From positions 1-64,000 of the forward strand of contig CBFFRP010000457.1 of NCBI GenBank assembly GCA_965644295.1: DNA of 64,000 nucleotides, given 5' to 3'. The position numbers were made by a program, and so were the translations under genes. Source of the DNA: Paraphysomonas bandaiensis. Its lineage: Eukaryota; Protista; Chrysophyceae. The stretch's first letter is position 1, and every line of letters begins with the position of its first letter. The notes under the pieces were generated by a model. The model saw nothing but the letters and a program-made list of their open reading frames with translations. It ran no database searches and was not told the origin of the DNA. This document shows positions 11,001 to 59,500 of this stretch, in pieces.

Positions 11001-11541
11001 ATAAAACATATGAAAATGAAGATGATACTTGATTTAATGCATCAAACATATGTGATATATTACAAAATACTTGATTTTGATAATATTTTGAATATAAATT
11101 TAAAACTTTTAAATTATCTTTCGTTTCTTGTATATTATCAGTAGCATGTATAACCCATGGAACATTTGTATAATTTAATACATCCAAACGTAAAAATGTT
11201 TTAATTTGATATAATTTTGTATTAATTTGACGATATCCACGATTTGTATGATGATAGTCATAGTGTGGATGTGTATCATGTAGTATGTATATAATGAATG
11301 GTAAAGTACTACGAAAATCTGATTTATATTGACTATAAAAGTGTGATATAAATGATGAATGAGTGTGGGAGGGTAGAGGAGGGTGATGGATGTATGTATG
11401 GAGGGTGAGAGATGGAGTGGTGTTTATAAGGGAAATGAGTTGAGATGGTGGATAGATTGATGCCCAGTCGATAAGGATATGTTGTTCGATGGAAGTGGTG
11501 GAGTGGGAGAGAAGGAGGAAGAGAAAGGGATATATGTGCAT
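8074..11541 (-). CDS. 1155-aa multidomain protein: signal peptide, HATDN-containing domain, kinase-like domain, C-terminal class I SAM methyltransferase-like domain
   Basis: Intronless ORF; HRDIKSEH and LFDFTWA kinase motifs; VLDVGG, DLVLAL, LVIEWIDPADP and TRKIY methyltransferase-type motifs. Confidence 0.8.
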   Translation of the reverse strand: MHIYPFLFLLLSHSTTSIEQHILIDWASIYPPSQLISLINTTPSLTLHTYIHHPPLPSHTHSSFISHFYSQYKSDFRSTLPFIIYILHDTHPHYDYHHTNRGYRQINTKLYQIKTFLRLDVLNYTNVPWVIHATDNIQETKDNLKVLNLYSKYYQNQVFCNISHMFDALNQVSSSFSYVLLRVLPSTPYQYIIKNGKMRYMELLVSDYFRAKEILDGEAAIHILNDGLYDSTELMYENGGVEVGNVVTLENEQLWVDIRWLGDGTLPLDVQQRLLGSRVWQTDHYIPKSSLWPHLRSSTKDKRDDCSNPPPGTSTPIISVPVQVVEADVEGGQFHLNIYANQHVPTAVTCFCAAHDLSTPLCDQLLHAALDLYQNVTPSEAPSLDSTALILSKSLKSLNRCGASYVLPYIDDIDGFPYRVKNKTAVRLLTSPKQAVSDYVSCLEAAFDVSIQSSLNITLTTDSYQLVLHYVHDIRAHWIDIIPPGKTTFDLRLDIRQSISSSTINVSPEWIYRLVASAEEVTTPEFTVKRLCASDEMALRHLELYDSPTNSKHLEWIDAHRHVVFTDPRISADSMYINEYSTCCMGLSTFQVPLPNTFLKSSDSQYICDIDFENTNWTLYTGHISRSSENSKGRGTARLPGNSFCSVESQYHPVLKIRTHAVADPEVTYDAASVECYHNSLMNSPTIGLWKPLRGGRLATKYKPHFPRVYYTDPNHRVSGASVCISEYIDGLTLAEHIATKVTTIEDLASLFGAVIDILGMMAEKYVVHRDIKSEHFLVTEVVPNAEYHVTLFDFTWAVSPSVRNQYPVPSTVGYYYRFPLVDSFREAKETFNDVYSTGIVIRELFYMFARMDTSLFDPLIKRMLNVSKNAWSVSDIEELYANLLHVYEHMSSSSDTANKGRYLCKKCEEHSGKSVMVEVSMNSSLVKLSGLHTSATISASDTGIIIANVSSSSALDNVRYEMIRSVMTRLDGWSVLDVGGDELALLSLVCVNQHARSVWVSNEHRIQSGAAPYEEPGVDILTNHLNWNSFRERWHVQNNILNSTMHLSIKVDLVLALNCLHVFTYCSRGGHLAKAVGALAIHASRVLVIEWIDPADPEMIDILASCPTSEGDSVYSLDEFLLVMNTIFDHSVQHLGDVSPTRKIYIGQHVHKRI

Positions 11542-11622
11542 TGCAATGTGGAATATCTACACACACAACTATAAGATACATGCATACGATACCATACCAC
11601 AATATACCCTATATAACCCTCT

Positions 11623-12412
11623 ACACATACATACACACATACATACACACATACATACATACATACATACATACATACATACATACATACATACATACAT
11701 ACATACATACATACATACATACATACATACATACATACATACATACATACATACATACATACATACATACATACATACATACATACATACATACATACAT
11801 ACATACATACATACATACATACATACATACATACATACATACATACATACATACATACATACATACATACATACATACATACATACATACATACATACAT
11901 ACATACATACATACATACATACATACATACATACATACATACATACATACATACATACATACATACATACATACATACATACATACATACATACATACAT
12001 ACATACATACATACATACATACATACATACATACATACATACATACATACATACATACATACATACATACATACATACATACATACATACATACATACAT
12101 ACATACATACATACACACATACATACACACATACATACACACATACATACATACATACATACATACATACATACATACATACATACATACATACATACAT
12201 ACATACATACATACATACATACATACATACATACATACATACATACATACATACATACATACATACATACATACATACATACATACATACATACATACAT
12301 ACATACATACATACATACATACATACATACATACATACATACATACATACATACATACATACATACATACATACATACATACATACATACATACATACAT
12401 ACATACATACAT
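11623..12412. repeat. (CATA)n microsatellite, ~790 bp, between two divergent start codons
   Basis: Near-perfect tetranucleotide array between ATG 11541 (-) and ATG 12474 (+). Confidence 0.98.
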
Positions 12413-12473
12413 AGTCTCCGCTTATATTCAAACATCTCATCATTGTATCTCATATACACCTCCATCCTTTCCA

Positions 12474-14230: not shown

Positions 14231-17200
14231 CTATTCCACAATAGGGTTCACATACGTTGGCAAATTCAGTGCTTTACAGAAGTGATTGCACTTATGAGTT
14301 TTAAAAAATCTATCCATGCCGACCTGTCCCAGGTTTGTTCCTCCAAACTGTAACACATTCTGACAGTGGATGGATGGCGACAACAGGGTGAACTGGCCAT
14401 CGCTGTATACGCCTTGGCAGTCCACTACCATTAAGAAACCTTCGGTAATATAGTGTGTAAAATGAGAAAATGTTTGAATGATAGAATGATCAGTTCCTAA
14501 AGGGCTGGGACAGGGGAGGCATAGGCCATGGTTAGAGTTGTACTTTTCAGTAGTTCCATCCACCCGTTTCTCCAATAATACAATTGGTGCGCCAGACCTC
14601 TGTGCGAGCTGAATGACAAGAACGGGGTTTACAGAAACAGTCGGAGAATTGGGTGGCTTTTGATGACAGAATGCCTTGCAAAGAATGGACGTCACATTGG
14701 TTGTCACAACTGTTGTGAAGGCTTCACTAGTAAACAAATCTTCACTCTGAACCGCCGCCCTTGGAAAACGTATAAACCCTTGTGTCCAACTACTATCTGC
14801 TGAGTCTTTATACATAGCCTTGAAAATCGCCCTCTGGTTCGTTCTGGCGGTGGCATGGTTACTTACTTTAACTTCCATGGGGACAGTTGGAACAGTGCTC
14901 AGGTTTACAAGTGACGAAACTCTGTTCGCAACAATATCTGCAACACTGCCGGAGCACACTAAGTTGTACCTTACTGCCTTCTCGGGTGAAATGTCTCTCC
15001 ATTCTGATTCTTCTATAGATAGTGTGCTGAGCTGATTCAACATATCACCCACAAGATCGTGACGAGATATAGTATCTGATAGATTACTTGCCATGCTTGT
15101 GATCACAGCACCTGTGAGAGTAGATATCACAGATGCCGGATCTTGTGCATCAACACTTTCAATGTATGCTCGCGATAACTCTTCACCCCCTATTGGGTAT
15201 CCGATATCTATTAAATCACTTTCAGTGTCTGGATCATCACTGGTATCACTGGCAGCAGCTAATCGATTAAAAGTTTGCACCATTATATCCGTTGCGCTCT
15301 GGAGACGCCCGAAATAATATTTCACACGGAGTTTTTGCAAATCTCGAATAATGGGCTGGGGAGTCAAACTGGAAGGATCCCCTCCCGGATAATCATCCCG
15401 CGGAAGGTTGTGATATTCTGAACCATGGCAAGGCATGTCGCCTACCCCACATTAGTACATTACACTGAAACAGTGTTAAATTTCGGAAAGGACTTACCAA
15501 TATGGAAAAGGACTCGAGTTGTTGCTTGCCAGTAGAGATTTGTCACCAATTTCAACCCGCCCAAAACATCTGCCAGCATATCCCACCCTTCAATGTATTA
15601 CACGGTCAATATGATACAAATCGAATGACTTGAAATGCGAGGTCAATAAATGTAATAAGCCTATTTCCACGCATGCTAACACTCTACCAGACTATAAATA
15701 CCACGAGCATGTACTAACCTCCACCTCCAGGCCTGAGCTCTCCAATAACACGCTTAAATTGCTCTACATCACGAGTAAGGTCGACTACAATACGTGTCTT
15801 ACACTTGTCATTGGCACTAGCATTGTCGTTAACGTGATAATATGATATTAGTGCTAGTCGAAGTGAAGAATCGGGATGTAAATCTCGTACAGCATCTACA
15901 ATATCAGATATTTGTCGTTGAATGGCTCGTATATATGGATACATCGAACTAGTGCAATCGATTAAGATACAGAGATCTAACGATGCAATCTCTCGAAGTC
16001 GGACTCCAACTTCTGCATGAAAATGGTCATATGGACATGATGATATATATAGATATAGATATAGAAACACACATAATGCTTATTTAACTAATACCTTCAA
16101 TCATATATCATATATATGGCCATGACAGTACAATACGTAACCATATACTTGCATGCTTAAACCTTCAATTACATACCACTACATGCTACTATACAACTAT
16201 AGTGCTACACATATTCCATTATACCACTATTCATATTACTAGACACCTCTATACATTTTACTATACCACTATACATGATAATATACCGCTATACATATAA
16301 ATATACACCACACTACATATCACTCTACCACTATACATATTATATATATTACTATACATTGCTATACAAATTACTATACCACAATTCGTATAACTATACC
16401 ACTGTACATACTACTATACCATTATTCATATTACTATACATATTAGTATACCCCTTTACACAACTATACATATTACTATACACTACTATACACTAGTATA
16501 TATATTAGTATACTACTAACATGTTACTAGACTACTAAACACTCCTATGCATTTTACTATACACCACTATACATATCACTCTGCAATATATACACATTAC
16601 TATAACTACTAGTACACCACTTTACACTACTATAGACTACTATGCATAGTAACATACCACTACACCCTATTATACACTACTATAAATATTACCATACAAA
16701 TATACCACAACACACTACTATACCTAGAAGTATACCACTCTACCCTACTATAGACCACTATGCTGACTATTATACACACTACTATACCACTATACCCTAC
16801 TATAGACTACTATACTTACTACTATGTACCACTATACATTACTATACCACTATACGTACTATACACCACTATACCACTACACATTACTATACACTATACC
16901 CTATAACTAGTACACATACTATACACCACTATACCACTACACACTACTATACCTAGTAGTATACCACTAAACCCTGCTATAGACTACTAAAAATAACTAC
17001 TACGTACTATTACACCACACTATACATACTACTATAGACTATAATACACACTACTATGCCCTGCTATAGACTACAAAAAATAACTACTACATACTACTAT
17101 ACCACACTATACATACTACTATGCCACTACACACTACTATACCTAGTAGTATACCACTATACCCTGCTATAGACTACTAAAAATAACTACTACATACTAG

Positions 17201-17795
17201 TATACCACTACACACTACTATAGACCACTAAAAATAACTACTATACACCACTATACATAATACCATACCATACACTATTATACACACTACTATACCTAGT
17301 AGTATACCACTTAACGTATTATACCACAATACATACTACTATATACACTACTATACCACTATACCATACTATAACTAGTATACATACTACTATACTGACT
17401 ACTTTACCACTATACATAATACCATACCACTACACATACTAAACCACTGCACACTACTATACCACACTATACATACTACTATACTGACTACTATACCACA
17501 CTATACATACCACTATACATACTAGTATACCACTACACACTACCATACCACTATACACCACTATACATACTACTACACCACACTATACATACTACTATAC
17601 ACCACTACACACTACTACACACCACTATACAGTATAAGATATGGGAATACCATCAATACTACTCGTCCGGCTTCTTCTTTCATTACAAATATTATCATCT
17701 GCCTTTCGCTTACCCTTCAGAGGCGATAAACTATCAGTTTTCATATATCTAAATGCTGTTTCAGATCGAAAACTAGATTTTGTATTATTTTTCAT
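14231..17795 (-). CDS. VWA-domain alpha-kinase (VwkA-like), about 4 exons; exon 1 17795-17651, exon 2 16012-15719
   Basis: DLCILIDCTSSM MIDAS-type motif, DVLGGL, IGDMPCHG; alpha-kinase KYNSNHG, QTFSHFT, VVDCQG, TNLG..G, HKCNHFC. Splice phases are consistent; exon 1 is less certain. Confidence 0.8.
16175..17635. repeat. Degenerate ACTATAC/ACCAC low-complexity repeat filling the putative first intron of the alpha-kinase gene
   Basis: ~1.45 kb nearly G-free on + strand, built from actatac/actac/accac words. Confidence 0.9.
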
Positions 17796-18577
17796 ATATT
17801 TCAATAAATTTCAATAAAATTTCCCTAAAAATGGGGAATAATATGTGTGTTGATAGAGAAAAGTGAGGAAGAAGGAAAGTTTTTCACTTACTTTGGAGTT
17901 GATTATTGTATTGGAGGATAAAAGGAAGTGTAATGAACAGTCAGTGTATATATATATATGTATGTATGTAGAGGAAGATCTCTGTATGTATATGCTATAA
18001 AATATACGCATATGTTGATCTTTATATAGTGTAACCTGAAGAACATAACGGACCAATCATATGCTTCTATATTATTATATGAATATTTTATTGGGGTGAA
18101 TATTCACATACTTGTACATTGGACGACTGTTTGTACAATGGTGTAGTATGGGAATATATTGTCCAATTAAATCACTAGTTTACTTCATTGAGATAGCTGA
18201 TACGTTGAATATATTCTATGTCAAAATAGAAAGTAACAGTATTATAGAAAAGTGGGATATCTATATAAAAAATAGGTAAAAATATACACATTTCAGGTTT
18301 TAGTAAGCAAAAACCAGGAAAATAGATTTCAAATAGTAGTTGTGTAACTCCAACTGATCGTTAAAAATATATATATAAAAACTACAGAAAAATTCAATAA
18401 AATACAAGCTTTCTAGATAATAAAATAGAAAATAGAAGCTTTTCAGAAGAAAACAATGCTATTTTTAATACCACACTCTGCTGTTTCTATACTCAGTCTG
18501 CTGAGATGTTGTGCATTAAAGCATGATAGAATTTAAACTTAGACAATAATTCAGAGGGACTAACAGCACTGTCGACA

Positions 18578-28807: not shown

Positions 28808-29866
28808 GTATGTATGTATGTATGTATGTATGTATGTATGTATGTATGTATGTATGTATGTATGTATGTATGTATGTATGTATGTATGTATGTATGTATG
28901 TATGTATGTATGTATGTATGTATGTATGTATGTATGTATGTATGCATGTATGTATGTATGTATGTATGTATGTATGTATGTATGTATGTATGTATGTATG
29001 TATGTATGTATGTATGTATGTATGTATGTATGTATGTATGTATGTATGTATGTATGTATGTATGTATGTATGTATGTATGTATGTATGTATGTATGTATG
29101 TATGTATGTATGTATGTATGTATGTATGTATGTATGTATGTATGTATGTATGTATGTATGTATGTATGTATGTATGTATGTATGTATGTATGTATGTATG
29201 TATGTATGTATGTATGTATGTATGTATGTATGTATGTATGTATGTATGTATGTATGTATGTATGTATGTATGTATGTATGTATGTATGTATGTATGTATG
29301 TATGTATGTATGTATGTATGTATGTATTTATGTATGTATGTATGTATGTATGTGTGTATGTATGTATGTATGTATGTATGTATGTATGTATGTATGTATG
29401 TATGTATGTATGTATGTATGTATGTATGTATGTATGTATGTATGTATGTATGTATGTATGTATGTATGTATGTATGTATGTATGTATGTATGTATGTATG
29501 TATGTATGTATGTATGTATGTATGTATGTATGTATGTATGTATGTATGTATGTATGTATGTATGTATGTATGTATGTATGTATGTATGTATGTATGTATG
29601 TATGTATGTATGTATGTATGTATGTATGTATGTATGTATGTATGTATGTATGTATGTATGTATGTATGTATGTATGTATGTATGCATGTATGTATGTATG
29701 TATGTATGTATGTATGTATGTATGTATGTATGTATGTATGTATGTATGCATGTAGGTAGGTATGTATGTATGTAGGTAGGTAGGTAGGTAGGTATATATG
29801 TAGGTAGGTACATATGTAGGTAGGTAGGTACATATGTAGGTATATATGTGTAGGTAGGTAGGTAGG
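28808..29866. repeat. (TATG)n microsatellite, ~1 kb, grading into (TAGG)n
   Basis: Direct; ends ~15 bp before the transposon TIR. Confidence 0.98.
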
Positions 29867-30116
29867 TGTGTCATAGATAGTGGGTGACTACCTAAATTGC
29901 ACAAACACATAAATGCATAAAAAATCTGGGATTATAGAAATCTGGGTATTTATGCAGGGTGTGACTTCCTTAATTGCATAAATACATAAATAATAAAATG
30001 GCCATTGCAGATTTCATGCATATTTGAATTTTAAAAATAGTGAAGTCTCTTGCAGTGATGAGTGAGACATATGGAGTGGATATTTTTAAAATAGTAAAGT
30101 AAGGAATTCGTCGAGT

Positions 30117-32405: not shown

Positions 32406-33656
32406 ATGCTCCTTCTCTTATTCCTTCCTACCATTCTATCCACCACATTCATCCCTCCTTCTCACCCTTCTCTCTATCTTAACGGTCGTACAGTTCCCTC
32501 AATATCTCCTATACCATATATATCATACGATCACCCTGGTATCACTGTATCTATAGCCATACAAGGATCATCCTATATTGATATTTTATTACAACAAAAA
32601 TATTATCATCAACCAAATATTTTTTGGATTTATTTGGACAAACAGGCTACTGGAGACATCATTGATACATCCTTACATACATACTCATATATAAACTCAT
32701 CAGATGGTAACTCCTCATATACTCATTACCAATCAACTCCTATACGATATCCACTTGTTAGAAACCTTACCTCTGATCCTCATGTTGTGTCTATTATGAA
32801 AGTCACTGAAGCAGATTGGAATAATCCCAATCCGACACCAAACTACATTGACTTTCATGGTTTTATTATTGATTCAGGTGATATCATTCCACTACCAGAC
32901 CCTCCCATTAGGAGGGTAGAGTTTGTAGGGGATAGTATCACTGCTGGCTACTGTAACATGTGTAAGGGGGCCGATGAAGGAGCGGAAGGGTATACACTGG
33001 AGTCGTTTGGTGCATCTTGGCCCACTTTGGTATGTGATGCGTTTCAGGCTGATTGTCACACTGCAGGTTAGTGGCGTATATGAATGGATATGTATGTATG
33101 TATGTAGGTTAGTGGTATCCAAGCTTTAATGTTCAAAAGTTGTTGTGATTGTATTTGTTCAGCGTGGTCGGGGCTAGGCATGGTTCGAAACTGCTGTGGG
33201 GGCGATGTCTTCATGCCGGAGATATACACACGTGCCCTTGCCTCCGTATCCGGATCAGTGTGGTCCTTTGATGGTTCATGGACCCCTGATGTCGTGGTGA
33301 TTAATCTGGGTACTAATGATGGCCTAGACCCTGACTCTCCAGGAATATTAGAGGAAGAGTATCAGAACACATATGTAGAATTTGTACGAAACATATCGAC
33401 GTGGTACACTCCCAGCCCTACATTCTTCCTTGCCTGTGGACCTATGAGCGATGCCTACTGTGGCTATGTACACAACGTCATATATAATCTAACCGCAGGA
33501 GACCATCCCCTGTCAGTCCACTTCCTTGACCAAACAGGAGTATTGGACGATTCAAACAGGTGCTGCGATCACCCCGACGAAGGTGCAGATAAGATTCTCG
33601 CAGATATCACTTTAACGGACATTTCCGATGTTATGGGGTGGGATTACACACCATGA
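32406..33656 (+). CDS. Secreted SGNH/GDSL esterase, carbohydrate esterase family 2-like; intron 33067-33162
   Basis: Signal peptide, VEFVGDSITAGY, AWSGLG, VINLGTND, CCDHP. Confidence 0.9.
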
Positions 33657-37183: not shown

Positions 37184-37210
37184 GACAATCTTTAGATCCA
37201 TATAAAGTTA

Positions 37211-40119: not shown

Positions 40120-40126
40120 ATGTATG

Positions 40127-40160
<34 letters not shown>

Positions 40161-41098
40161 TGTATGTATGTATGTATGTATGTATGTATGTATGTATGTA
40201 TGTATGTATGTATGTATGTATGTATGTATGTATGTATGTATGTATGTATGTATGTATGTATGTATGTATGTATGTATGTATGTATGTATGTATGTATGTA
40301 TGTATGTATGTATGTATGTATGTATGTATGTATGTATGTATGTATGTATGTATGTATGTATGTATGTATGTATGTATGTATGTATGTATGTATGTATGTA
40401 TGTACATATGCAAGTGTGTATGTATGTATGTATGTATGTATGTATGTATGTATGTATGTATGTATGTATGTATGTATGTATGTATGTATGTATGTATGTA
40501 TGTATGTATGTATGTATGTATGTATGTATGTATGTATGTATGTATGTATGTATGTATGTATGTATGTATGTATGTATGTATGTATGTATGTATGTATGTA
40601 TGTATGTATGTATGTATGTATGTACATATGCAAGTGTGTATGTATGTATGTATGTATGTATGTATGTATGTATGTATGTATGTATGTATGTATGTATGTA
40701 TGTATGTATGTATGTATGTATGTATGTATGTATGTATGTATGTATGTATGTATGTATGTATGTATGTATGTATGTATGTATGTATGTATGTATGTATGTA
40801 TGTATGTATGTATGTATGTATGTATGTATGTATGCATGTATGTATGTATGTATGTATGTATGTATGTATGTATGTATGTATGTATGTATGTATGTATGTA
40901 TGTATGTATGTATGTATGTATGTATGTATGTATGTATGTATGTATGTATGTATGTATGTAGGTATGTATGTATGTATGTATGTATGTATGTATGTATGTA
41001 TGTATGTATGTATGTATGTATGTATGTATGTATGTATGTATGTATGTATGTATGTATGTATGTATGTATGTATGTATGTATGTATGTATGTATGTATG
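40120..41098. repeat. (TATG)n microsatellite, ~980 bp, ending ~67 bp before ATG 41166
   Basis: Direct; one interruption (ACATATGCAAGTG) occurs twice. Confidence 0.98.
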
Positions 41099-41165
41099 TT
41101 GGTGTTGTTATGTGGTTATTCATATCTTATATATGTTCATATCACTCTGTACATCTTAATCCACA

Positions 41166-42715
41166 ATGGGTATAACATCAAGTAAACCTCCACCAGTATC
41201 TAATGTCTATCAAACAATAAAAATCTTAAATTCACATAAAAAAGAGTTTTCATTAATTGGCTTACATGAAAGTGATGTAGGTCACTTATATGGTACATTT
41301 GCAGCTATTGATTTGGATTCTTCCCTTGAAATTGAATTAGATGAATTTTTATCATATATAAAAACTGAAAATACTCATTTTACACAAGAAATTTTTCGTA
41401 TTTTTGATTGTAATCATAATACAAAAATGGATCCATATGAATTTATTGTATCATTATGGAATTTTTGTACAATGAGTCATAATAATATCGGTAATTTTTA
41501 TATATATATCTCTAAATCAATTCATTTAACTATATTTTTATAGCAATGTTTGTATTTGAATTATATGATAATGATGATAGTGGATATTTGGATAAGATAG
41601 AGATGGAACGGATATTAAAAGATACATATGGGGCTGATTTTGATTCCAGTCCAACTGCGAAGAAGTATGGTATATGTATAGTAGTATGGTATATGTATAT
41701 ATGTATGTATGTATATATATATATGTATATGTAGAAGTGTGGTATACGTATATAGAAGTATGGCGTATGTATGTGAGTATATACATATGAGTGTATGTAT
41801 ATATGTATGTAGGTATATGTTTTCCTCATGTTACTATATATGCGCAGGTTTTTATCTAAAATTGAAGAGAAAGGACGAAAATCAATGACTGCTGAATACT
41901 TTTTACAGTTAACAAAAAAAAATAGTGCTGTATTATATCCTGCATATGTTCTACAGTCTAAAATACGTGAAGAAGTAGTTGGTGATTTATTTTGGACACG
42001 ACTAACGGCTAAGCGTGAAGATATGTTTGGATCTACATATATACCTGTTGATATTATTCTCCAGTATCATGGGAATAAGAAGGAGATTAGTTTACATTAT
42101 TCGAAACGGGAAAAGAAGCGTGATATGTGAGTGTATTGATATGCTTCAGTGCTATGTGTATATATACATAGTGTATTCCTGTATATTCCAACTGTAGTCC
42201 TGACTGTTGCTTACTTAAATTATATATAATATAAACAGAAAGAGACAGAAGACAAAAGAAGAGGCAGCTCTTGCGGCTGCTGAGATTGATGTGTATGTGC
42301 ATTCATCTCTCAAGCTGCCTTGTCTCATATTGCGTTTTATTCAGAGTGGGGTACAATCAGAAACGCCGTGTGTCTGTACTCACGAAACTCTATACGTATG
42401 TAAACTCTGATCTAATGGAATCTTCGTATTGATATTCGTGCTATAGTGGGTCACAAACAGTTGGTCGCCGGATGAGTCAACTTATCAAAACTAAAGAGAA
42501 AGGACTGTATAAAAAAGGCCAGGGATCTCCGCCAAAGAAATCTAGTAGTAAAGGGAAAGTGTAAGTATATGTTTGTAAGCTGAAATAGGGATGCTCGTAC
42601 GGCATGGTAAAATCACTGTCTGTCACACTATATAACTACAGACATTTACTCTTTGTATGTTATAGTGGTGCCTCCTCATGATGAAATCGTTAGCTCGAAG
42701 GGCACAGGCATCTAG
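41166..42715 (+). CDS. EF-hand (calcineurin B-like) protein with N-myristoylation motif, multi-exon; 3' exons approximate
   Basis: MGITSSK; EF loops DLDSSLEIELDE, DCNHNTKMDPYE, DNDDSGYLDKIE; GT-AG introns. Confidence 0.8.
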
Positions 42716-43257
42716 GGCGTGTAATGTTTTGGATGACATGTTATCTGTAACCAGACTGTATGTATGTGAAGAATGTATAGACTGCTGCAGTCGCTGTGGA
42801 TTTATTAGTCCTGAGATATTCTACTGTGTGTATATTGCGAGAATATATATGGAGTAAATATTACTTGCTATGCAAGTGTGTAATATATATGTATTTATAT
42901 ATAATAATTGAGATTTGTCAGTGTTGCAGCTGCTATGTGAGTGCTAGTTTGGAATTTCATGCAGATTTAATTATACTGCTATGCATCATTGAGAATTCAC
43001 CCCGTTCGTGTATCAAGTATCAATATATTTAAGCGTCTATTGTAGATTCTACTTCTTACTACTGTAGTTAAATAGTAAATAGTGCTTAGCCACCACAGCT
43101 TGGCGCTCGGGGACAAAGAGAACTACAATGGTATATAATATATATTTTAGTATTTATTTCGTGGTAGCATTCGGATATGTAAAGTAAGTTAAATTACGAC
43201 AATGATGCTAGTATTCATGGTAAACCCATAGTAATTAGCGCATATTCGTTTAAAATT

Positions 43258-44491
43258 GGGATATATTATTCAACCTAGTCAATTTGGTGGAATTTCCTAG
43301 TCATTCCATTTTCGGTGTAAAAACCTAGTCAAAGCCATAAATGACTCAACCTAGCCAAATATAGTATTAAGCCTAGTCGTTCTTATATCCATTGATTACA
43401 CATTGCGACTGTCTAAGATACGTGCACACACCACACAACATATTGATGGCTCGTAGAGCATCACAACAAGCATAACAATTCATTCATATCTACATATCTA
43501 CATATCTACATAACAGTGTATGTGTATGTATATGCAGCATATCTGTATAGCTTATTAGTGTACGATGGGTCTCTTATCAGTGTTATGAGGAAGAGGAGTG
43601 GTCAGTGTAGCTGTACTGTGGACATACCCCCATGAATATACGTAGACACACACCTGGAGATCTTCATACGCTATGAGTGAGATCGCTTACCCTCCTTCAG
43701 CGACTTGCTTGTTGAATGAGCGACTGCTTTGACTTCCAGGAGGGCATGAATACCCCATGTTTCTAGACCGATTAAGAAAAAAGAGGGGTTTTCATGTCAA
43801 AGTCTGTGTATTCGTAAAAACAACATCACTGAATTGGACTGCCTTTCCAGGAGCAGATCAAACGATGAGGAGTCTGTCGTACAGTGGAGCCCTTTAATCT
43901 CTCTGCCACGGGATGGATCACTGGCAGTCTCCCTCAGTAGTCTCTTAATCACCTGTACACTACAGTGGTTGTGACCTGTACTTTACAGTGGTTATGATAT
44001 GTACATTACTGTGGTTGTGGGACAATAGCCGCTGTTGGCCTTACTGACTATCCGTACATCCCTTGCGAGGTATGTGCGAGACATATATTCTCTAGTATAT
44101 ATATTTACAATCTTGTGAGTGCTAATCATTGTGTTATGTACTATCATAGGTACCTCAGTACTACTAATGTCCTCGATTGTGGAGCAATAGCCCCCTACTA
44201 TATTTTTTCTCTGTGCAACTGCGTTTCACTGTTGCCTATAGGTGCACATCACTTGGGAGGTGTGTACGAGATATATATTGTCCTGTACATATCTTAATGT
44301 TATCGTCAGGGAACTTTATTGTCAAGCTCCATTATGCCTGAAAGGATTTGCGGCATTCCACCTAGTCATTGTAAAGTTAAAAATCTAATTATTTAATGAC
44401 TAGGTTTTTCAACCTTTTGACTAGGTTTTTACTCCAATTTTGGTGTGACTAGGAAATTCCACCAAATTGACTAGGTCGAAAAATAGATCCC
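43258..44491. mobile_element. Non-autonomous Mutator/MULE element, 1234 bp
   Basis: ~75-bp imperfect TIRs (GGGAT.TATT.TTC.ACCTAGTCAATTTGGTGGAATTTCCTAGTCA); 9-bp TSD TTTAAAATT at 43249-43257 and 44492-44500. Confidence 0.9.
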
Positions 44492-44698
44492 TTTAAAATT
44501 TACCATTATTTAAGTATATTGTATGTGGCTAAACAGTCTTTCAATCGCTCAATGACATATTTAACCCATTATAAGGCACGGTTACACTCTATTCGTGTTG
44601 CTGCATATCCAAAGTCCCTATTGCATCAACATCGACACAGATAAACCAAATAGCCTATTGCACACAGTAGCTAGCCGGATATCCGGGTTCAACTAGTG

Positions 44699-46594
44699 CT
44701 AAATGTCTTTCTCGGACACTTCTTGGGAAGCTGAGCGCACAGCTCCAAGAATATTCTTCATCCGATTGGTGGCAATAATCTGAATGATACAATAAGAACA
44801 TATACATAACCACAAACTGATGGTACGAATCGAACATACATATACAAAACGATATATAAACATCGATGTTTAGACATGACTGCATGTGATAAAAGGAAAA
44901 CAGTGGCATATATATAGATAATATATCAACACAGAAGAGAGTATACACGCCCATTATACGAAAACTCACCGCCTTTGCGGCTGCTTTGAACTTCCTTGTT
45001 GCATGAAATTTTTTGAAGTGGCTGAGGTTGGCCTCCAGAGATCTCTGTGCAAGTTCACTGGCGTCTCTTGTGATCTGGACATTGTATAGCAATTAGGGCA
45101 CAGGAGGAGGTTATGTGTAGCGCACATAAGAGATATATCAAGGCAATGATATCAAAAAAACGCGCACACAAAATAAAGGGAAGCGTACCCAAGAGTGGTT
45201 GAGAGCCTCTTCGGACGTGTATCTTTCGAGCGGATTCACTTTCAGCAATCTCCTGATAAGATCCTTAGCTTCTTCACTGACGGCGTCCCAGTACTCAGGA
45301 TGGAACTCATATTCGGCATTCTTAATCTTCTGGAATAACACTTTCTGGTTGTCGTCGTGAAATGGGGGATATCCACCAAGGAGTATGTACGTAATAACCC
45401 CTGCAGATATTGCACATTACATATCATAAGTACGTATGTCCTAAAGTAAACATATAGGTCATAAATAATATCTTCGATCAACCCACCTATCGACCACATA
45501 TCAACCGCCTTGCCGTAGGGTTGCGTTGAAAGAATCTCAGGTGCTACGTAGCCCGGGGTTCCACACTGAGTTTTCAAAGTCATGTAACCCTCTGACTTGA
45601 TGGCAAACCCGAAATCCGCCAATTTCACGTGCGCGTCATCATCAAGACTCGCCAATAACAAGTTCTCAGGTTTGAGGTCTCGATGAACCACGTTTCTCGC
45701 ATGGCAATAGTGTATCGTAGACAACAGGATATACACCAGATCACGAGCCTCCTTCTCACTGTAAAAAGTCTTTTTAACAATTCTGTCGAAAAGCTCGCCT
45801 CCTTCCATGTACTCCATTACCAAGTAATAAGTGGTCTCTTCATCATAAAATCCCAGACATTTAAGGATATTGGGGTGATTCATGGCGCGCAAAATAATAA
45901 CTTCCTGTTTCAGAGCAGCCTCGTCGTCAGCTGGAAGAGCTTTCTTTGAGATGCATTTCACCGCCGCTTTCTCCTTCGTGCGTCTGTTCCGAGCCAGGCG
46001 GACAGTGCTAAATGCTCCCTCACCCACCTATACCAGCACCATATAATTAAAGTATATCATAATCACATTCTCATAAACACTCATATACTATCATTTATAT
46101 AAAATGTAAACCAGACAATACAAGGATGAGTTACTTACCACTTCACCTAGCTCATACTTTTCAGCAAATCTTCCTTCATCAGGAATCAATTCAGTTGGCA
46201 TAATAGGAATAATCGGTGCTGTTTCTTCTGGTTCTTTCTTCTTTTGAACTTGTGATGATACAGATGATGTTACAGAACCTGCATTAGTATTAGTAGATGT
46301 CTTTGTTGCTGCTGATGAGGGTGTGTTGGATGGTACAGCAGCTTTCGGCTCATCTTTTACAGATTTTAAAGGCTCCGTTTCATGTTTGGAATGTTTTTTT
46401 GATTTTTTATCATTTGAATTAGTATTATTTGATGTTTTTTGTTGAATTTGTTGTGTTGATTGTGTTGTTAATGGATCTCTGAGTTCATTTGAATGATCAT
46501 GAGTCTCTATTGATTGAGGGGATGTTGATGGAGGGATTTCTGTTGGTTGAGATGCGGTGTAATTTGCCTCTGGTTTGGAATCAGTGCATCCCAT
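44699..46594 (-). CDS. Ca2+/calmodulin-dependent protein kinase (CaMK1-like) with MGC acylation motif, multi-exon
   Basis: GEGAFS, AVK, HRDLKPEN, DFG, GTPGYVAPE, DMWSIG; CaM-binding RKFKAAAKA; last exon ends EKDI-stop at 44699. Confidence 0.93.
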
Positions 46595-46679
46595 TTTTGG
46601 GCTCTAGTGTGATGATGGAATATATTCCAAGTTATGTGGAGTACAGTGATGATAATAGTGATAATAGAGAGATGTGTGA

Positions 46680-47539
46680 ATATATGTATGTATGTATATA
46701 TGTGTACAGTATATAGCGATAAGCAAGAGGTGGAGAGGGGCGTATGTAGTGATATACTATGTATACAGCAGAGGATGGATGTTTATGTATGGGTGCAGTT
46801 GTCTATGAGAAGATACGTATGTATGTATGTATGTATGTATGTATGTATGTATGTATGTATGTATGTATGTATGTGTATGTATGAATGTATGTATGTATGT
46901 ATATATGTGTACAGTATATAGCGATAAGCAAGAGGTGGAGAGGGGCGTATGTAGTGATATACTATGTATACAGCAGAGGATGGATGTTTATGTATGGGTG
47001 CAGTTGTCTATGAGAAGATACGTATGTATGTATGTATGTATGTATGTATGTATGTATGTATGTATGTATGTATGTATGTATGTATGTATGTATGTATGTA
47101 TGTATGTATGTATGTATGTATGTATGTATGTATGTATGTATGTATGTATGTATGTATGTATGTATGTATGTATGTATGTATGTATGTATGTATGTATGTA
47201 TGTATGTATGTATGTATGTATGTATGTATGTATGTATGTATGTATGTATGTATGTATGTATGTATGTATGTATGTATGTATGTATGTATGTATGTATGTA
47301 TGTATGTATGTATGTATGTATGTATGTATGTATGTATGTATGTATGTATGTATGTATGTATGTATGTATGTATGTATGTATGTATGTATGTATGTATGTA
47401 TGTATGTATGTATGTATGTATGAATGTATGTATGTATGTATGTATGTATGTATGTATGTATGTATGTATGTATGTATGTATGTATGTATGTATGTATGTA
47501 TGTATGTATGTATGTATGTATGTATGTATGTATGTATGT
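46680..47539. repeat. 205-bp-period duplication of a unique segment plus (TATG)n arrays in a divergent intergenic region
   Basis: GCGATAAGCAAGAGG... at 46716 and 46921; TATG arrays at ~46817-46900 and 47022-47539. Confidence 0.95.
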
Positions 47540-47796
47540 AGATACACTCGTAGATACGGCGTGTGTACTGTAGTGTATGTCGGTAGGTACATCTAGAGAT
47601 GATACACACAGCAGTTAGTATGTAGGATACACACCTCAGCAAGAGATGCTACATACCTCTACATATACCGCTCTACATACCTCATCGCTCTCTCCCTCTC
47701 CATATACACATACATATATATAAACAAACCCTCACCTCAATCCACACCCCATCAAACTACATTATAGTATCCCCATAGGATACATTCCCTTTTATA

Positions 47797-48192
47797 ATGG
47801 TATTTTCCGGATATTTAACTAAAAGAGGATCAGTTGTTCCTAATTGGAAACGTCGCTACTTTGAATTAAGTGTCAATACATTAACATACTATGAATATGA
47901 AGGTGGTACACGTAAAGGATCAATACATATTAATTCAACAACATTAATTAAAGAAACACATTTTATGTTAATTAGTCATGCATTTTATATTGAAAATATT
48001 GATGATAATACAGTCTTATATCTATCAGCTGATACTGAGAGTGATAAGAATTTATGGATCAGTGCATTAATGAAAACAATTGAAAGGCTTAAATCTCCTC
48101 GTACATCTTCAATGGATAATACAGCTGTGGAAAGTGCGAATACAGAGGCTTCAGCCTCTAGTGAAGTGAAAGATGTTAACACTGAAGGTTAA
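47797..48192 (+). CDS. PH-domain protein
   Basis: GYLTKRGSVVPNWKRRYFEL...LSADTESDKNLWISAL. Confidence 0.9.
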   Translation: MVFSGYLTKRGSVVPNWKRRYFELSVNTLTYYEYEGGTRKGSIHINSTTLIKETHFMLISHAFYIENIDDNTVLYLSADTESDKNLWISALMKTIERLKSPRTSSMDNTAVESANTEASASSEVKDVNTEG

Positions 48193-50429
48193 AAGTGTTT
48201 TATGCACTACATGTATTGGAAATTTTTGGTGTAAAACATCATGGCTATATATCCAACTGCTGGATGTGATTTAGTGCCCTTTTATTTTAGATATCGATTA
48301 ATAAGCAAAGTATTCTTATACTGCCATATGGGATTGTTTTTCTTGGTGCAATTCATTACCAGCAATTAAGTAAATTATATGGTTAGACCCCTCCCTTTAC
48401 AAATAATACACGGAACTTATTGTATTCATGCATAGTCACGCATACATAGTGTAGATCAAGTATGGGTCTACTTGGTTCGGTACAGAAGACAGAAGGTACT
48501 CTAGGGTTCAAATAATGCGTTGTAGTCAACACATCCCGCGTTCTAAGCCACATGTGCGCGGTGTATACACAGCTAGAAATTAGCTTATTGGGATACGGTG
48601 TATTACACCCTAGCAACGAATTTGTTTGTTAGCCTTCTCCATCATATGCCGCAGTTCAGTATTCAAATATGGTTTGTGAGAGTCTAGTAGACGTCTAGCC
48701 GGGCCACATGGAGAACGCAGGAATTCTCATGTAATAAGGTCAAAAGCTTCCTTGTAATAGAAGAAGTAGCTACAGAAATTTAGATACGTTGATCATTGAT
48801 GTACTTAAAATGTGGTAGTAATAAAACTACACCAAAAATTAGTCATTACCAGAAGTGCAGAGCTTAAAAAATTACGAAGTGATCATACATGCCAAGATCG
48901 CAGTAGACGAATTGGTAATAATTTAACTCCACTATGTAGCGCATACATCACTACATTCATTTCAAAAAACAACAACAAATTAAAATCAATCAAAGAAAGA
49001 AATGATAAATCAAATCCACAGCTGATCAATTGATGCCACAGCTAAAGCGATGATATTACGATGCTAACCTCCTAGTAATCTTGGGTTTTAATGAATGTGA
49101 TAAGAATAAATATAATTAGATGTGGTTACTTCATTTATGGTTAGTTGAGACCGGAAACATCCTATTGAGCTCTCTGTTTTTTATAATATCCTCTTAAAAT
49201 CTACATGAATAAAGATCCGTTGTTTTTCAGCTTCCATTTTGTTTTGAGTATAGTTGCTCAGATGTTGCCTAGCAGTGTGCTTTCCTCTTTTGTGAGGAAA
49301 AAAGGAGATATAAGAAGCTACCTTTATTTAGTATTTCTGTAAACAAGTGATACACCAATACAATAATTAGATACTTCTGAGTTTATTTAAATATTTCTTT
49401 GCCTCAAATTTGGACTATGAATGAATTCGGAATTCTTGTAAGAATGCATTACAATAAGCGTTACTTATGTGTGTATTACATCACAGATTGAAAACATCTA
49501 ACGAAATGTCCTTAAATCACATTGCAAGTTATCAGTAGTGTTTAAGATTGTGTGGCGATTAACCATGATATTCATTGCTTTAATATTATTTAAAGATTAG
49601 CGACTGCAGATACTCGTTAATTAATGATACTTACAAAGAAGAGAAGTTATATATCTTGTACATTACGAGTGGCATTAATGATTGCAAATCATCTATTGGA
49701 GTGTGTTATAGAATGGATTTGGTTTGATATATGCATGATATGGATTTCATGACATGGATATTTACTGCAGCAGCAGCTCTCTTGCATGTCTGTACTGCTG
49801 TATATTGGACTTGAGAGTAACCGCTTTTTGTAGCCAATCATAGACTGGAATTGTATATCAAAATGATATGATTTGATAATCTCCATATCAGAATATAGTG
49901 GTTTTGATGTGAAATTATTACAGGTTTTGAAACAACAACATAAAAATAGGGGATTTCTAGTTTCTCGAATGCAGAATGTGATGAAAGAACTAGCATATGA
50001 GTTTCTTTCTACAAAGAAATTCAAAAACATAGGATTTTTTAAAGATCCTCCTTGTTGAAATCTAGAAATCCTGGCTTTCAAGATATCGTACTTCTGTTCG
50101 CACGTACACTGCACGCAACTGCGAAATCGGAATACGTATCGGAATTTCTGTAATTAATATACGCATATATTTAGCAATCAAAATACTATAAATTCCAGTA
50201 TAATTTTCATATTAAAACTGGATCTTTTCTGTAAAAACAGTATATATATTTTATTGCTATATCTTCCTATATATTTCCGTGGTTTTTAGATACCAATTCT
50301 ACAGAATATCTTTGTATATATATGCGAGTAATCACTGTACTTAACGTCACTGTTATTATATAGTTTAAACACAAGAGGTGACCTGTGGTTATAACAACAG
50401 AGGTAAGAGAGTGTCAGTTGACTGTTCCT

Positions 50430-51050
50430 GTATGTATATATGTGAGTATAGTCACTTGTATGTATGTATGTGAGTATAGTCACTCCACACAGCATGTATG
50501 TATGCATGTATATATGTGAGTATAGTCACTTGTATGTATGTATGTATGTATGTATGTATGTGAGTATAGTCACTCCACACAGCATGTATGTATGCATGTA
50601 TATATGTGAGTATAGTCACTTGTATGTATGTATGTGAGTATAGTCACTCCACACAGCATGTATGTATGCATGTATATATGTGAGTATAGTCACTTGTATG
50701 TATGTATGTGAGTATAGTCACTCCACACAGCATGTATGTATGCATGTATATATGTGAGTATAGTCACTTGTATGTATGTATGTGAGTATAGTCACTCCAC
50801 ACAGCATGTATGTATGCATGTATATATGTGAGTATAGTCACTTGTATGTATGTATATGAGTATAGTCACTTGTATGTATGTATGTGAGTATAGTCACTTG
50901 TATGTATGTATGTGAGTATAGTCACTTGTATGTATGTATGTGAGTATAGTCACTTGTATGTATGTATATGAGTATAGTCTCATAGATACACACCCCACAG
51001 CATGTATGTATATATATGAGTATGTGTGTATATATGTCTGGTGTATATAT
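50430..51050. repeat. 74-bp (and 28-bp sub-unit) TATG-derived minisatellite upstream of the GDH ATG, probably in a 5'-UTR intron
   Basis: Repeated GTGAGTATAGTCAC spaced by TATG; candidate donor AG/GTAAG near 50403 and acceptor TTTTAG at 51083. Confidence 0.9.
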
Positions 51051-55079: not shown

Positions 55080-55349
55080 TTACGAGTAAAATCCCCCTAA
55101 AACAGTGTCTCTTGAAGGCTCCTGAATTATAGTCACCTCATGAGCAAATTTAATACGGTCTGTATTCTCTTTATGTATATATTTTTGTTGTTTAATATAA
55201 TTTTTTTCTTCATCTTTAATGTTTTTATAGTAAAACATACGCTCATGAAAGGATAATAATTGTGGGTTAGTAGTTGGAGCTACAGGGTGCATGAATGCTC
55301 GCTCTTTCTTAGAGATATTGCCTGGGAAAGGATTGCGTTCAGTTGTCAT
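55080..55349 (-). CDS. Hypothetical 89-aa protein, divergent from TAF1
   Basis: MTTERNPFPG... with protein-like composition; no motif recognised. Confidence 0.5.
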   Translation of the reverse strand: MTTERNPFPGNISKKERAFMHPVAPTTNPQLLSFHERMFYYKNIKDEEKNYIKQQKYIHKENTDRIKFAHEVTIIQEPSRDTVLGGFYS

Positions 55350-55624
55350 GATGTAGTATATGCATAAAACACTGTTATTATGCAATAAATAGAGATAAAT
55401 ATGAAGTTCTTTGCAATGAATTGTTATGTTGAGTTGTCTATAAGGAAATGTGTGTTCCAGTTGGACTGTACTATGCATATATACATACAGTATACCACTG
55501 AATAGACGGGGCTTTCTATACTTTATTATCACTGTATTCTGCTGAGATGTATGTATATGGTGTTTAGAGAAATGGGATTCAAGTACGATTTGGATTTTCT
55601 TACACCCTGAAACCCCGATATTTA

Positions 55625-56011
55625 GGGTGCGTTCGGTAGACCAAAAAAGTGCTGGATTTGCTCAAATTCGCTGGATTTCATCCATCCACTGGAATTTGGA
55701 AAATCTTACCGAACGCAAAAAAGCAAAATATGCTCATTTGCTGGAAAAAATCCAGCGAAATTAGTTTCGTGTTTTGAGTCGAAAGACGATTCACTGGATT
55801 TTTGAGAAGTGCTGGATTTTTGAATCACGATTATACATACAGTATATGCGTTAAATACACGTATACCGGATGTGGCAATCGTTCGGTAGTAAGTGCTATG
55901 CCCATTTGCTGGATTACCCAAATACAGTGCATTTTCAACCAGTGGAATTTATCAAAAATCCAGCGAATGCAAATCCAGCACAAAAATCCATTGGATGAAC
56001 CGAACGGGCCC
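55625..56011. mobile_element. Harbinger/Tourist-like MITE, 387 bp
   Basis: TIRs GGGTGCGTTCGGT / ACCGAACGGGCCC, TTA TSD on both sides, subterminal GCTGGATTT/AAATCCAGC repeats. Confidence 0.88.
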
Positions 56012-56064
56012 TTATACAAAGAAAAGACAAGAAAGATATCAGAAACCTCCATTTTTGAATTAGC

Positions 56065-56438
56065 GTATGTATGTATGTATGTATGTATGTATGTATGTAT
56101 GTATGTATGTATGTATGTATGTATGTATGTATGTATGTATGTATGTATGTATGTATGTATGTATGTATGTATGTATGTATGTATGCATGTATGTATGTAT
56201 GTATGTATGTATGTATGTATGTATGTATGTATGTATGTATGTATGTATGTATGTATGTATGTATGTATGTATGTATGTATGTATGTATGTATGTATGTAT
56301 GTATGTATGTATGTATGTATGTATGTATGTATGTATGTATGTATGTATGTATGCATGTATGTATGTATGTATGTATGTATGTATGTATGTATGTATGTAT
56401 GTATGTATGTATGTATGTATGTATGTATGCATGTATGC
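56065..56438. repeat. (TATG)n microsatellite ~100 bp upstream of the TAF1 ATG
   Basis: Direct. Confidence 0.98.
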
Positions 56439-56538
56439 ATATTTCCAGGCATCATAACACTGTCATGTCATTATATTACATGCGTAGCCACTAGTCTCAC
56501 TCTATACTTCTAATTTAAAACTAGAGCTATTAGTAAAC

Positions 56539-59500
56539 ATGGCTATGGCTATGGTGAAGGGCGACAAGCCCCTGGCTCCTGTCAAGAATATATATGGAAT
56601 GGCCACTCCTGATTTCGAGACATTCCAGCTACTCATGAGAAAGGTATGTATATGGGGGGTATGTGAATGCTGTATGGTTACTGGGAGGGTATGTGTATGC
56701 TGTATGGTATATGGGAGGGTATGTGTATGCTGTATGGTTACTGGGCGGGTATGTGTATGCTGTATGGTTACTGGGCGGGTATGTGTATGCTGTATGGTTA
56801 CTGGGAGGGTATGTGTATGCTGTATGGTTACTGGGAGGGTATGTGTATGCTGTATGGTATATGGGAGGGTATGTGTATGCTGTATGGTATATGGGAGGGT
56901 ATGTGTATGCTGTATGGTATATGGGAGGGTACGTATATGCTGTATGGTTACTGGGAGGGTATGTATATGCTGTATGGTTACTGGGAGGGTATGTATATGC
57001 TGTATGGTATATGGGAGGGTACGTATATGCTGTATGGTTACTGGGAGGGTATGTATATGCTGTATGGTTACTGGGAGGGTACGTATATGCTGTATGATAT
57101 ATGGGAGGGTACGTATATGCTGTATGGTTACTGGGAGGGTATGTATATGCTGTATGGTTACTGGGAGGGTACGTATATGCTGTATGGTTACTGGGAGGGT
57201 ATGTATATGCTGTATGGTATATGGGAGGGTATGTATATGCTGTATGGTTACTGGGAGGGTACGTATATGCTGTATGGTATATGGGAGGGTACGTATATGC
57301 TGTATGGTTACTGGGAGGGTATGTATATGCTGTATGGTTAATTGGAAGCGGTGCAAATCTGTACCCTTTTAGTGGTAATGATAGATTTGTTATTACGTTC
57401 TTAGAAGTCAACACGACTTATCTTGTTGAAGTTGTTCATTTGAATTTTTTAGGCTGATCAGCTTGAGGGATTCGAGAATGCAGGTATTTCCTGCGTTGAT
57501 ACGACCGAGATAGACAATATATACACAGCAAGGTACTGATGGAGCCATTTGTACTGTTATTGCGCACATGTGCCCCTTTGGCATTTTACTTGTGCAATGG
57601 ATTATTACTTGTGTGTCTTATTTCGTGAATTTGTAATACATAAGTACAGAATATCTTCGGGAAATTATGTGCAGTTCCCACAAGAGAGCGATATTCACAC
57701 GCTTCAAAGTATGTCTGTACGCAGTGTGACGTATCCTAAGAGTCATTTACACGAATTCCGTCGTATTCAGTACGTAAAATGTAAACTCAGATTATGAATT
57801 ACTAAGATTTACATTCCAGGTCCGGGAATCCCCGTAAACGGCTGTTGAAAGATCCGACACCGTGTATTCGACCATTAGGTTATGATTTGTGGGAGTGTGA
57901 TATAGTCTGGGATGATATCCCAATTACCAGTCGGTCTTGCCAGACCTACAATGATATTCGTAGCCAAGTTTCTCATAGTCTCGATGGCGTATCGGACAGC
58001 ATTATTGGCCGCAAGCTACGTCGAACACTCCATGGCAGCAATGTTGCAATCTCCGAGGGTGGGTGGGTAGATAGTATAATCTGGGACGAAGATAGAGTAT
58101 GCACGTTTAACCCCAAAAGTCTTTCTGATGGTTCCAACAACTATGATGATATGAATGTACCACTTATTGACACCTCGAAGCCGACGGAAGTCTATATTCC
58201 TTGCGAAGAAGCCGTTGGAGTTTCACCGTCACCTCGTATTCCTGTAGAGGATGAAAACACGTTGTCCACTTCCGCCTCTGAGCCAATGGAAGTGGTCAGT
58301 TCTGAAGCTACCACTTCACCCCAGCCTCGTGAATCCGCAGGCACATCATTAAAAGGTAAAACCAAACGATCTAACCCACGTCCCATCGCAACCGGACCCC
58401 TGGCGAGACTCCAGAAAGCAAAAGAACGACATGAGCGCTTGGAACGCTATAAAGCTGCAGCGTTAGGTGACAAGTCGGTTCTGGAAGCCATTCAATCAGA
58501 GAATAGCAATCAATCTAGTTTAGTTGATCGGACGCAAACACCGGGTATACCTTCAGGGGCACTTACTAGACGAAGGAAAATGAATGCTGCAGCTGATCTT
58601 GAGCATTCTATCATTGCCGCTAAGCATCGTAACACAAGAGCGTGTTTGAAGAATTTGGAACTGGTTTATTTTCATAGGTATCGCATCTATTATATCTAGA
58701 TAGTATGTTTATATTTCCCTGTCAGGCCTCATTTAACGAAGATGGCTAAACACACTGTTTGGAACATTATGCTCGAGAAGAAAGGGAAACATAAGGTGGT
58801 AAAGCGTGTGATTGAGTGCTAGATATTTATATGTAGAATTGTATATGCATCATTTATAGACTATTTGTCAGCAGCTTGAACTGGATTAATGATATTTAAA
58901 TGTCAATTAACTAATTTGAATATATATGTCAGCTTTCTCAGAGAAAAGGAAATATCAGACAGCATTTAGTGAGCCAGATTTCAAAGGCGTCTGATTTGGC
59001 TTTAACTGATGGAGACTTTGTGTGTATTGAGTACATTGAGGAGAACCCGAACATGTTGCTCAATATTGGTATGTACGCATCTTTATATGTGTCAAATTTT
59101 TGAAACACCATGATAGGAATGGCATCGAAAATCTTAAACTACTACCGATCCCCCGTTGTGGACTCTGCACCTGTACAAACCGGTTTTGCTCAAAATATGG
59201 AGGCAGATGGGCCTCATATTGCGATGGACGGTACCTCGGCTGGTGGGGCCAAGGGAACTCGCCCCCGCTCTAACTCACACTCAAGTGGGCATGGGAAAGG
59301 GGGGGTTGGGGGTGTACATAGTACTCTCAGTTCAGGGAGACTTCCGAGACACGTCCAACGGTTCACAATGGCGGGCCAACGGCAGAGTGGAGTCAGCAGT
59401 ATTGACATACCCAAATTGCCCGAGGGAGTAACGGAGGTACGATTCTGTATTTTTGGGGTAGTTAATGTATATAAAGGAAGAATTTGTTATACAAATTCTA

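Follow-up and report, generated by a model that had tools for sequence, protein, structure and literature searches.

Five long tandem arrays of the tetranucleotide ATGT, which reads as ACAT on the complementary strand, are present in a 64,000-nucleotide stretch of the genome of the chrysophyte Paraphysomonas bandaiensis (positions 1 to 64,000 of contig CBFFRP010000457.1, assembly GCA_965644295.1), which is referred to here as the window. The locus raises two questions: whether such arrays occupy a defined place relative to genes, and what kind of element they are. A preliminary description of the window had offered an answer to both. It took the arrays as marks of gene starts and proposed that they are ApT islands, in which an AMT1-type enzyme deposits symmetric N6-methyladenine (6mA). 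Here, we report that (ATGT)n arrays are found a short distance upstream of gene starts, for the most part in the gaps of head-to-head gene pairs, and that they have a preferred direction with respect to the nearer gene. The methylation proposal found no such support, and other accounts of the arrays are weighed below.

Five arrays in the window

The window is eukaryotic, with a G+C content of ~39%, and is dense with additional tandem arrays beyond the five. DNA runs filed under at least four organism labels contain the locus. The five TATG/CATA arrays of the preliminary description are real: Tandem Repeats Finder (TRF) recovers all of them, with lengths (as assembled) of 370-1040 bp and purities of 88-98%. 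Array 1 (11625..12413; ACAT on the forward and ATGT on the reverse strand; 197 copies, 98% matches) lies in a head-to-head gene gap, 84 bp from the ATG at 11541(-). Array 2, (GTAT)260 on the forward strand with 97% matches, occupies 28808-29849 according to TRF and 28808..29867 when its (AGGT)n variant tail is included. Array 3 (40120..41099, forward strand, (ATGT)245, 97%) is separated from the ATG at 41166 by 67 bp that hold a TATATA motif and no AG dinucleotide. Array 4, on the forward strand at 46784..47540 (TRF, 46817-47540), consists of (GTAT)n in two blocks (181 copies, 88%) and is located between head-to-head genes that start at 46594(-) and 47797(+). Array 5 (56065..56437, forward strand, (GTAT)93, 98%) likewise lies in a head-to-head gap, between the open reading frames (ORFs) 55080-55661(-) and 57806-58699(+). 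All are dense in ApT, as had been described; this step makes up 0.23-0.25 of the dinucleotide steps in the arrays and 0.123 in the remaining window, a roughly twofold difference (0.24 vs 0.12). Nevertheless, the window alone has no statistical power: 75% of random intergenic points lie upstream of one gene or more, so that five of five would be expected by chance with a probability of 0.75^5 = 0.24.

Position of the arrays relative to genes

The 62.6-Mb assembly was therefore sampled as a whole. Arrays were listed in genome order by their boundary patterns, C or G followed by (ATGT)10, and two independent samples (20 loci of 10 kb and 30 loci of 3 kb) yielded 53 distinct arrays, ~5% of the total, all from the first ~145 contigs and the window. 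Genes were represented by proxies, namely open frames of at least 70 amino acids (aa) with positive codon-usage log-odds, trained on 33 ORFs of at least 300 aa from the fetched DNA. A count over the assembly gave 127,500 positions for (ATGT)10 and 123,970 for (ATGT)11, which corresponds to 3,530 perfect runs of at least 10 units; perfect ATGT runs add up to ~637 kb, or 1.0% of the genome. With 3.1 such runs per sampled array, the number of arrays is ~1,150-1,200.

The claim that the arrays mark gene starts holds genome-wide in this sample. Among the flanks of the 53 arrays, 78 face the 5' end of a gene and 10 face a 3' end (binomial p = 3e-14), while 13 have no ORF within 1.4 kb and five are cut by the end of the locus. 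Both neighbours could be resolved for 39 arrays, and 31 of these lie between head-to-head genes, eight between tandem genes and none between convergent genes (p = 1e-12 against the 25% expected for head-to-head pairs when the three classes follow a symmetric 25/50/25% distribution). Array-free gaps of the same loci, analysed with the same caller, gave the opposite picture, with 10 head-to-head, 32 tandem and 25 convergent pairs (Fisher p = 4e-7). Since control gaps of this kind neighbour a head-to-head gap and are thereby biased against that class, the comparison with the 25/50/25% expectation was added. At all ORF cut-offs from 70 to 150 aa, the share of 5'-facing flanks was 0.68-0.82 in gaps with arrays vs 0.39-0.50 in control gaps. 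Gap size does not explain the bias either: where no array is present, gaps of the head-to-head class are shorter than those of the other classes (median ~550-600 bp) and account for only 23-28% of intergenic bases.

The genes beside the arrays are real and unrelated to one another. When 20 flanking ORFs were scanned against Pfam, N-terminal domains were found to begin near the predicted ATG, as in Spt5, whose N-terminal domain starts at residue 6. Other flanking genes encode PRORP (protein-only RNase P), a seryl-tRNA synthetase N-domain, katanin p60, and FHA, RING, LRR, alpha/beta hydrolase and TatD proteins. The closest katanin relatives are 66-67% identical and lie on short contigs, and exact-protein look-ups for three array-flanking proteins returned no public record. 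The matches that carry names (Mallomonas, Ochromonadaceae, a chrysophyte and pelagophytes) put the organism within the ochrophyte stramenopiles. The distance from the array edge to the ATG has quartiles of 102, 254 and 478 bp in the sample, and TATATA-type motifs occur in many of the intervening stretches. In ~85% of the sampled cases, the presence of an array correctly points to a gene start no more than ~500 bp away on one side or both.

Transcript limits beside arrays 3 and 4

Contigs of four RNA-type runs were placed on 41100-46816, the interval between arrays 3 and 4. The contigs of the protein-kinase gene that starts at 46594(-) end at 46646, 46646 and 46648 in three of these runs. These ends lie 52-54 nt beyond the ATG on its upstream side, and a further 136-138 bp separate them from the first ATGT-like units of array 4 (46784), or 169-171 bp from its TRF start (46817). 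Owing to this agreement among three runs, array 4 is placed upstream of the transcript and not inside it. None of the four runs yielded a contig from 46649 to array 4, or in the first 190 bp after array 3 (41100-41290). In the same interval, the convergent gap at 42917-43248 is almost wholly covered by transcripts.

Two placements within a transcript were considered. Array 3 might have formed a 5'UTR intron of the downstream gene, but this is ruled out since the 67 bp between the array and the ATG contain no AG. It is also unlikely that an array in the common orientation serves as 5'UTR sequence, as its sense strand would present an AUG every 4 nt.

Anatomy and direction of the arrays

The sampled arrays range from 57 to 1367 bp as assembled (14-340 units), with a median of 459 bp and no preferred size. 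Short ATGT runs of 3-9 units are nearly absent, with five in ~260 kb, so that arrays are either missing or long. An all-against-all BLAST comparison of the 200-bp flanks of the 53 arrays revealed no shared family, and 51 of the 53 share nothing; the flanks being unique, the arrays are not copies of one mobile element. The exceptions are a local inverted duplication at one locus (L008) and a pair of arrays of 57-61 bp, L043 (C111:181132) and L047 (C136:11528), whose 200-bp flanks are identical on either side and which have no neighbouring ORF. This pair is a repeated element with a small ACAT tract, a class apart from the promoter arrays.

Within the arrays, direction is visible in the variant repeats. 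With the arrays read as ATGT, 13 carry an (AGGT)n variant tail at the 3' end and one carries it at the 5' end, and the AGGT, GTAG and TAGG variants are concentrated in the last fifth. The 60 bp past the ATGT-3' end are G+T-rich (G 0.26, T 0.34, C 0.14), often with (AGGT)n, and the opposite end switches abruptly to ordinary sequence. A gradient of decay along the arrays was also considered and is ruled out, since purity is symmetric along their length; the polarity is limited to the AGGT-type variants.

The arrays are also directed with respect to genes. With flank length equalised on both sides so that censoring was equal, the nearest 5' gene lies on the ATGT-downstream (tail) side of 32 arrays and on the other side of 12 (p = 0.004; 16:7 and 16:5 in the two samples), a polarity found post hoc in the sampled set. 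The nearer gene thus usually has ATGT on its sense strand. Arrays 1, 2 and 3 of the window follow this rule (the downstream gene of array 1 in the ATGT direction being the ORF 8074..11541(-)), and so do the two higher-order arrays of the gap 16080-24348 described below. At one sampled locus (L020:4374-4920, C36:74284-74830), (ACAT)n and (ATGT)n stand back to back with a 90-bp spacer and form a large inverted repeat, and both head-to-head genes see ATGT on the sense strand.

Genes next to the arrays of the window

Most of the gene starts named in the preliminary description stand, namely 11541(-), 32406(+), 41166(+), 46594(-) and 47797(+), whereas those at 12474 and 56539 are weak. The ATG at 11541 opens a 1155-aa ORF (8074..11541, reverse strand) that has a weak protein-kinase match and is oriented with its start toward array 1. 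Across this array, the ORF at 12474 comprises only 50 aa. Downstream of array 2, a 221-aa ORF with positive codon bias is located at 32406..33071 (forward strand). The large gap between the two is due to a PIF/Harbinger transposon (~29882..~32354) inserted between them, as had been suggested: inverted ends of ~45 bp and a 3-bp AGT target duplication were found, and without the element the gap would be ~62-65 bp. The transposon looks complete, with a DDE_Tnp_4 ORF at 31042-32172(-) and a second ORF at 30253-30984(+). It inserted 14 bp past the (AGGT)n tail of array 2 and is not part of the array system.

Array 3 is followed by the first coding exon of an EF-hand gene (41166..41489, forward strand; Pfam), which is covered by spliced RNA contigs from ~41426. 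The protein-kinase gene on the left of array 4 (44492..46648, reverse strand, ATG 46594) is spliced, with four introns, and expressed, as established by RNA contigs and by Pfam, which identifies 45242-46027(-) as a protein-kinase exon. On the right of the same array, 257 bp away, lies the first exon of a PH-domain gene (47797..48192, forward strand; Pfam 1.6e-15), with the PH domain beginning at residue 2. The ORF at 56539, beyond array 5, passes through a 30-bp minisatellite and has a negative codon bias (-0.079 per codon); its ATG is probably not a gene start. The proteins from 41166 (MGITSSK) and 46594 (MGCTDSK) both start with MG and carry S/T at position 5-6, and judging from these residues each N-terminus looks like an N-myristoylation site.

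Other repeats in the window

The gene at 37211 had been listed as one without an array. There is indeed no TATG array at this start, but a different tandem repeat occupies the same position: two inverted arrays of a 62-64-bp unit lie at 36005-36221 and 36636-37184, and the second, with nine copies, ends 27 bp before the ATG of this kinase-like gene. An 8.3-kb head-to-head gap (16080-24348) is filled by two further arrays, which lie on opposite strands. The first is a degenerate 10/20-mer array of 1.4 kb (16220-17631), C-rich on the forward strand, and the second is a 16-mer array of 5.5 kb (18699-24202; 344 copies, 93% matches), G/T-rich on the forward strand. For both genes that flank the gap, the G/T-rich strand of the adjoining array is the sense strand. 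The two look like higher-order repeats derived from ATGT. A 28/74-bp minisatellite with an ATGT core (50429..50979, forward strand) lies upstream of a glutamate-dehydrogenase-type ORF at 51395(+). The 30-bp minisatellite mentioned above (56653..57340, forward strand) follows right after array 5, has 23 copies and contains GTATGTAT.

At the end of the window, a 161-bp satellite (61934-64000) is present in at least 12.8 copies with 97% identity and continues past the window end. The segment 43249-44491 (1243 bp) is absent from a marine metatranscriptome contig that joins 43248 to 44492, where nine ambiguous letters resemble a target duplication, and its borders match many contigs with unrelated loose ends. 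Probably, a multi-copy transposon has inserted here, near the 3' end of the kinase gene, and other strains lack it. Rfam and tRNA scans of the window gave no matches.

Discussion

On balance, we favour the reading that the arrays form a class of (ATGT)n microsatellites upstream of promoters, expanded by slippage within untranscribed spacer and probably acting as a variable spacer or modulator between promoters. It stands close to two alternatives given in the preliminary description, length-variable promoters and a mutational process linked to the transcription start. According to this reading, the arrays would arise in place and lengthen by replication slippage in open, negatively supercoiled upstream DNA; head-to-head promoters are the sites at which negative supercoiling accumulates. 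They would persist only upstream of promoters, because nearly all of the rest of this compact genome is transcribed and the tract would be harmful in RNA. As (AUGU)n or (UGUA)n, it would bring an upstream AUG every 4 nt, GUAUGU look-alikes of splice donors and UGUA protein-binding motifs. Through their length and their alternating purine-pyrimidine character, the arrays would probably modulate or separate both promoters. More speculatively, the direction rule may spare the nearer promoter an upstream antisense RNA that is rich in GU and AUG.

Several points weigh against this reading. Tolerance alone would not lead one to expect more head-to-head than tandem gaps, nor a preferred direction, and the promoter effect is the inferred part of the account. 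The array lengths are those of the assembly, and the gene models are ORF-plus-codon-bias proxies and not annotation. At an ORF cut-off of 150 aa, the contrast with the control gaps is not significant (9/20 head-to-head), as short first exons drop out. Finally, a single transcript 5' end was located, from assembled contigs only, which by their nature do not formally prove a start, although three assemblies place it within 2 nt.

Among the rival explanations, it is scarcely credible that the association is a product of chance or of artefact, with simple repeats misplaced or inflated during assembly or with the pattern created by the ORF caller. Array lengths are indeed assembly-based, gene calls are proxies and the five arrays of the window are not significant by themselves. 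However, the two independent samples agree, the same caller gives the opposite skew on array-free gaps, for many flanking genes both orientation and start are borne out by Pfam domains and RNA contigs, and the arrays have unique flanks on both sides and lie inside contigs of 90-350 kb. Many cut-and-paste transposons favour open promoter DNA, and the Harbinger element lies only 14 bp from the end of array 2, so the arrays might be by-products of transposons aimed at promoters: footprints of TA-targeting elements that add TATG/CATA and are then amplified by slippage, or landing pads. We consider this origin improbable. The shared flanking element that marks transposon-borne microsatellites is missing here, as the flanks of 51 of the 53 arrays have nothing in common; purities of 97-98% over 250 units are a signature of slippage and not of serial footprints, and footprints would give neither a preferred direction nor an (AGGT)n tail.

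Very improbable, too, is the proposal that the arrays are ApT-dense platforms, comparable to CpG islands, for symmetric 6mA deposited by an AMT1-type enzyme. Their ApT density and promoter-proximal position agree with it, and an MT-A70 gene is present in the genome. A PF05063 search of the assembly found one such gene (C68:13155-14552, an intron-free ORF of 466 aa), but its best solved relative is an Arabidopsis METTL4-type protein (PDB 7cv6, E = 3e-26). The exon-by-exon search, which may miss split genes and is insensitive to genes with small exons, found no paralogue and no AMT1-type gene; for a clade search that the preliminary description had suggested, this is a weak negative, and the absence of AMT1 is unproven. 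The same kind of search of this intron-rich genome gave no match to a Dam-type methylase. AMT1 has been lost repeatedly across eukaryotes (PMC12695648). The AMT1-dependent 6mA domains of ciliates, green algae and early fungi (PMC12695648, PMC7145601) resemble the arrays in being ApT-rich DNA near transcription starts. Nevertheless, in species that have AMT1 the mark is found past the transcription start, in the linkers between the nucleosomes of active genes, and its distribution seldom tracks ApT content (PMC12695648), whereas array 4, the only one compared with RNA, is located upstream of where the transcript begins; the remaining arrays of the sample are upstream of start codons. This attractive interpretation is thus set aside as unsupported, until methylation data say otherwise. 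Alternatively, the arrays would be a selected, orientation-dependent cis-regulatory element (a set of binding sites, a nucleosome-excluding tract, or a Z-DNA-prone tract that absorbs the negative supercoils of divergent transcription and insulates the two promoters) whose length would set expression, which we regard as possible though rather doubtful. The strong bias to head-to-head promoters, the closeness to the ATG, the direction toward the nearer gene (32:12) and the polar (AGGT)n tail (13:1) speak for such an element, as do the Z-DNA score, the single-locus precedent of a promoter repeat in Plutella and the expression-affecting tandem repeats in 1/4 of yeast promoters, all taken up below. 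On the other hand, there are ~1,150 arrays for ~20,000 genes (an order of magnitude derived from ORF density), so that most promoters function with no array; the flanking genes share no function, lengths from 57 to 1367 bp show no preferred size, and no Z-alpha domain protein was found in a PF02295 search of the genome, although the control search likewise matched none of the test genomes. It is less likely still, though more probable than a transposon origin, that (ATGT)n is a true orientation-dependent promoter or insulator element at more than 1,000 promoters, read in the sense direction of the nearer gene. If this were true, the element would act through DNA structure (as a supercoil or Z-DNA sink), through a dedicated binding protein or as a platform for adenine methylation, and through array length the expression of both head-to-head genes would come under heritable and rapidly mutating control.

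Relation to known systems

Promoter microsatellites are already known from yeast, humans and single insect loci. The arrays share with promoter-associated tandem repeats a position a few hundred bp upstream of genes (78 of 88 resolved flanks face a 5' end) and, in the one case of array 4, a location outside the transcript. In budding yeast, 1/4 of promoters have tandem repeats that affect expression (PMC10027321, citing Vinces et al., 2009); they too lie upstream of genes, in nucleosome-poor DNA, and they vary in length and are thought to tune expression. The yeast repeats, however, are tens of bp long and have many motifs and no reported orientation rule, whereas here a single tetranucleotide forms directional arrays of 0.1-1.4 kb that make up ~1% of the genome and favour head-to-head gaps. 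A closer match in sequence is the (ATGT)n repeat in the ABCC2 promoter of Plutella xylostella, the length of which switches chromatin state and expression (PMC13710865). The repeat unit is the same and it also lies in a promoter, but it concerns one insect locus with at least 27 units and acts via E(z)/H3K27 methylation and Tip60, in contrast to the genome-wide class described here.

The arrays also resemble the Z-DNA-prone tracts found near transcription starts (PMC12123511, PMC5066173). ATGT is a perfect purine-pyrimidine alternation that, with the ZSeeker weights, gains 3.5 per unit, so that 15 units suffice to exceed the threshold of 50 (PMC12123511), and divergent transcription creates negative supercoiling at these sites. 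Half of the steps are AT/TA, however, which favour Z-DNA weakly, and the Z-DNA potential is that of a sequence score. Z-DNA also lacks strand polarity and therefore leaves the preferred direction unexplained. Polarity of another kind is familiar from human minisatellites, in which variant repeats cluster at one end of the array, reflecting a directional mutation process tied to flanking recombination hotspots. Variants cluster at one end in the (ATGT)n arrays as well, but here the polar end points toward the nearer gene.

We found no published description of a single tetranucleotide that forms kilobase arrays at ~1,000 promoters with a head-to-head preference and a polarity. Annotators of this genome can use the arrays as a practical guide to gene starts. 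Furthermore, they offer a natural system in which to ask how a simple repeat is kept within promoter spacers that are not transcribed, whether bidirectional promoters are tuned by the length of the repeat, and which directional process shapes the arrays.

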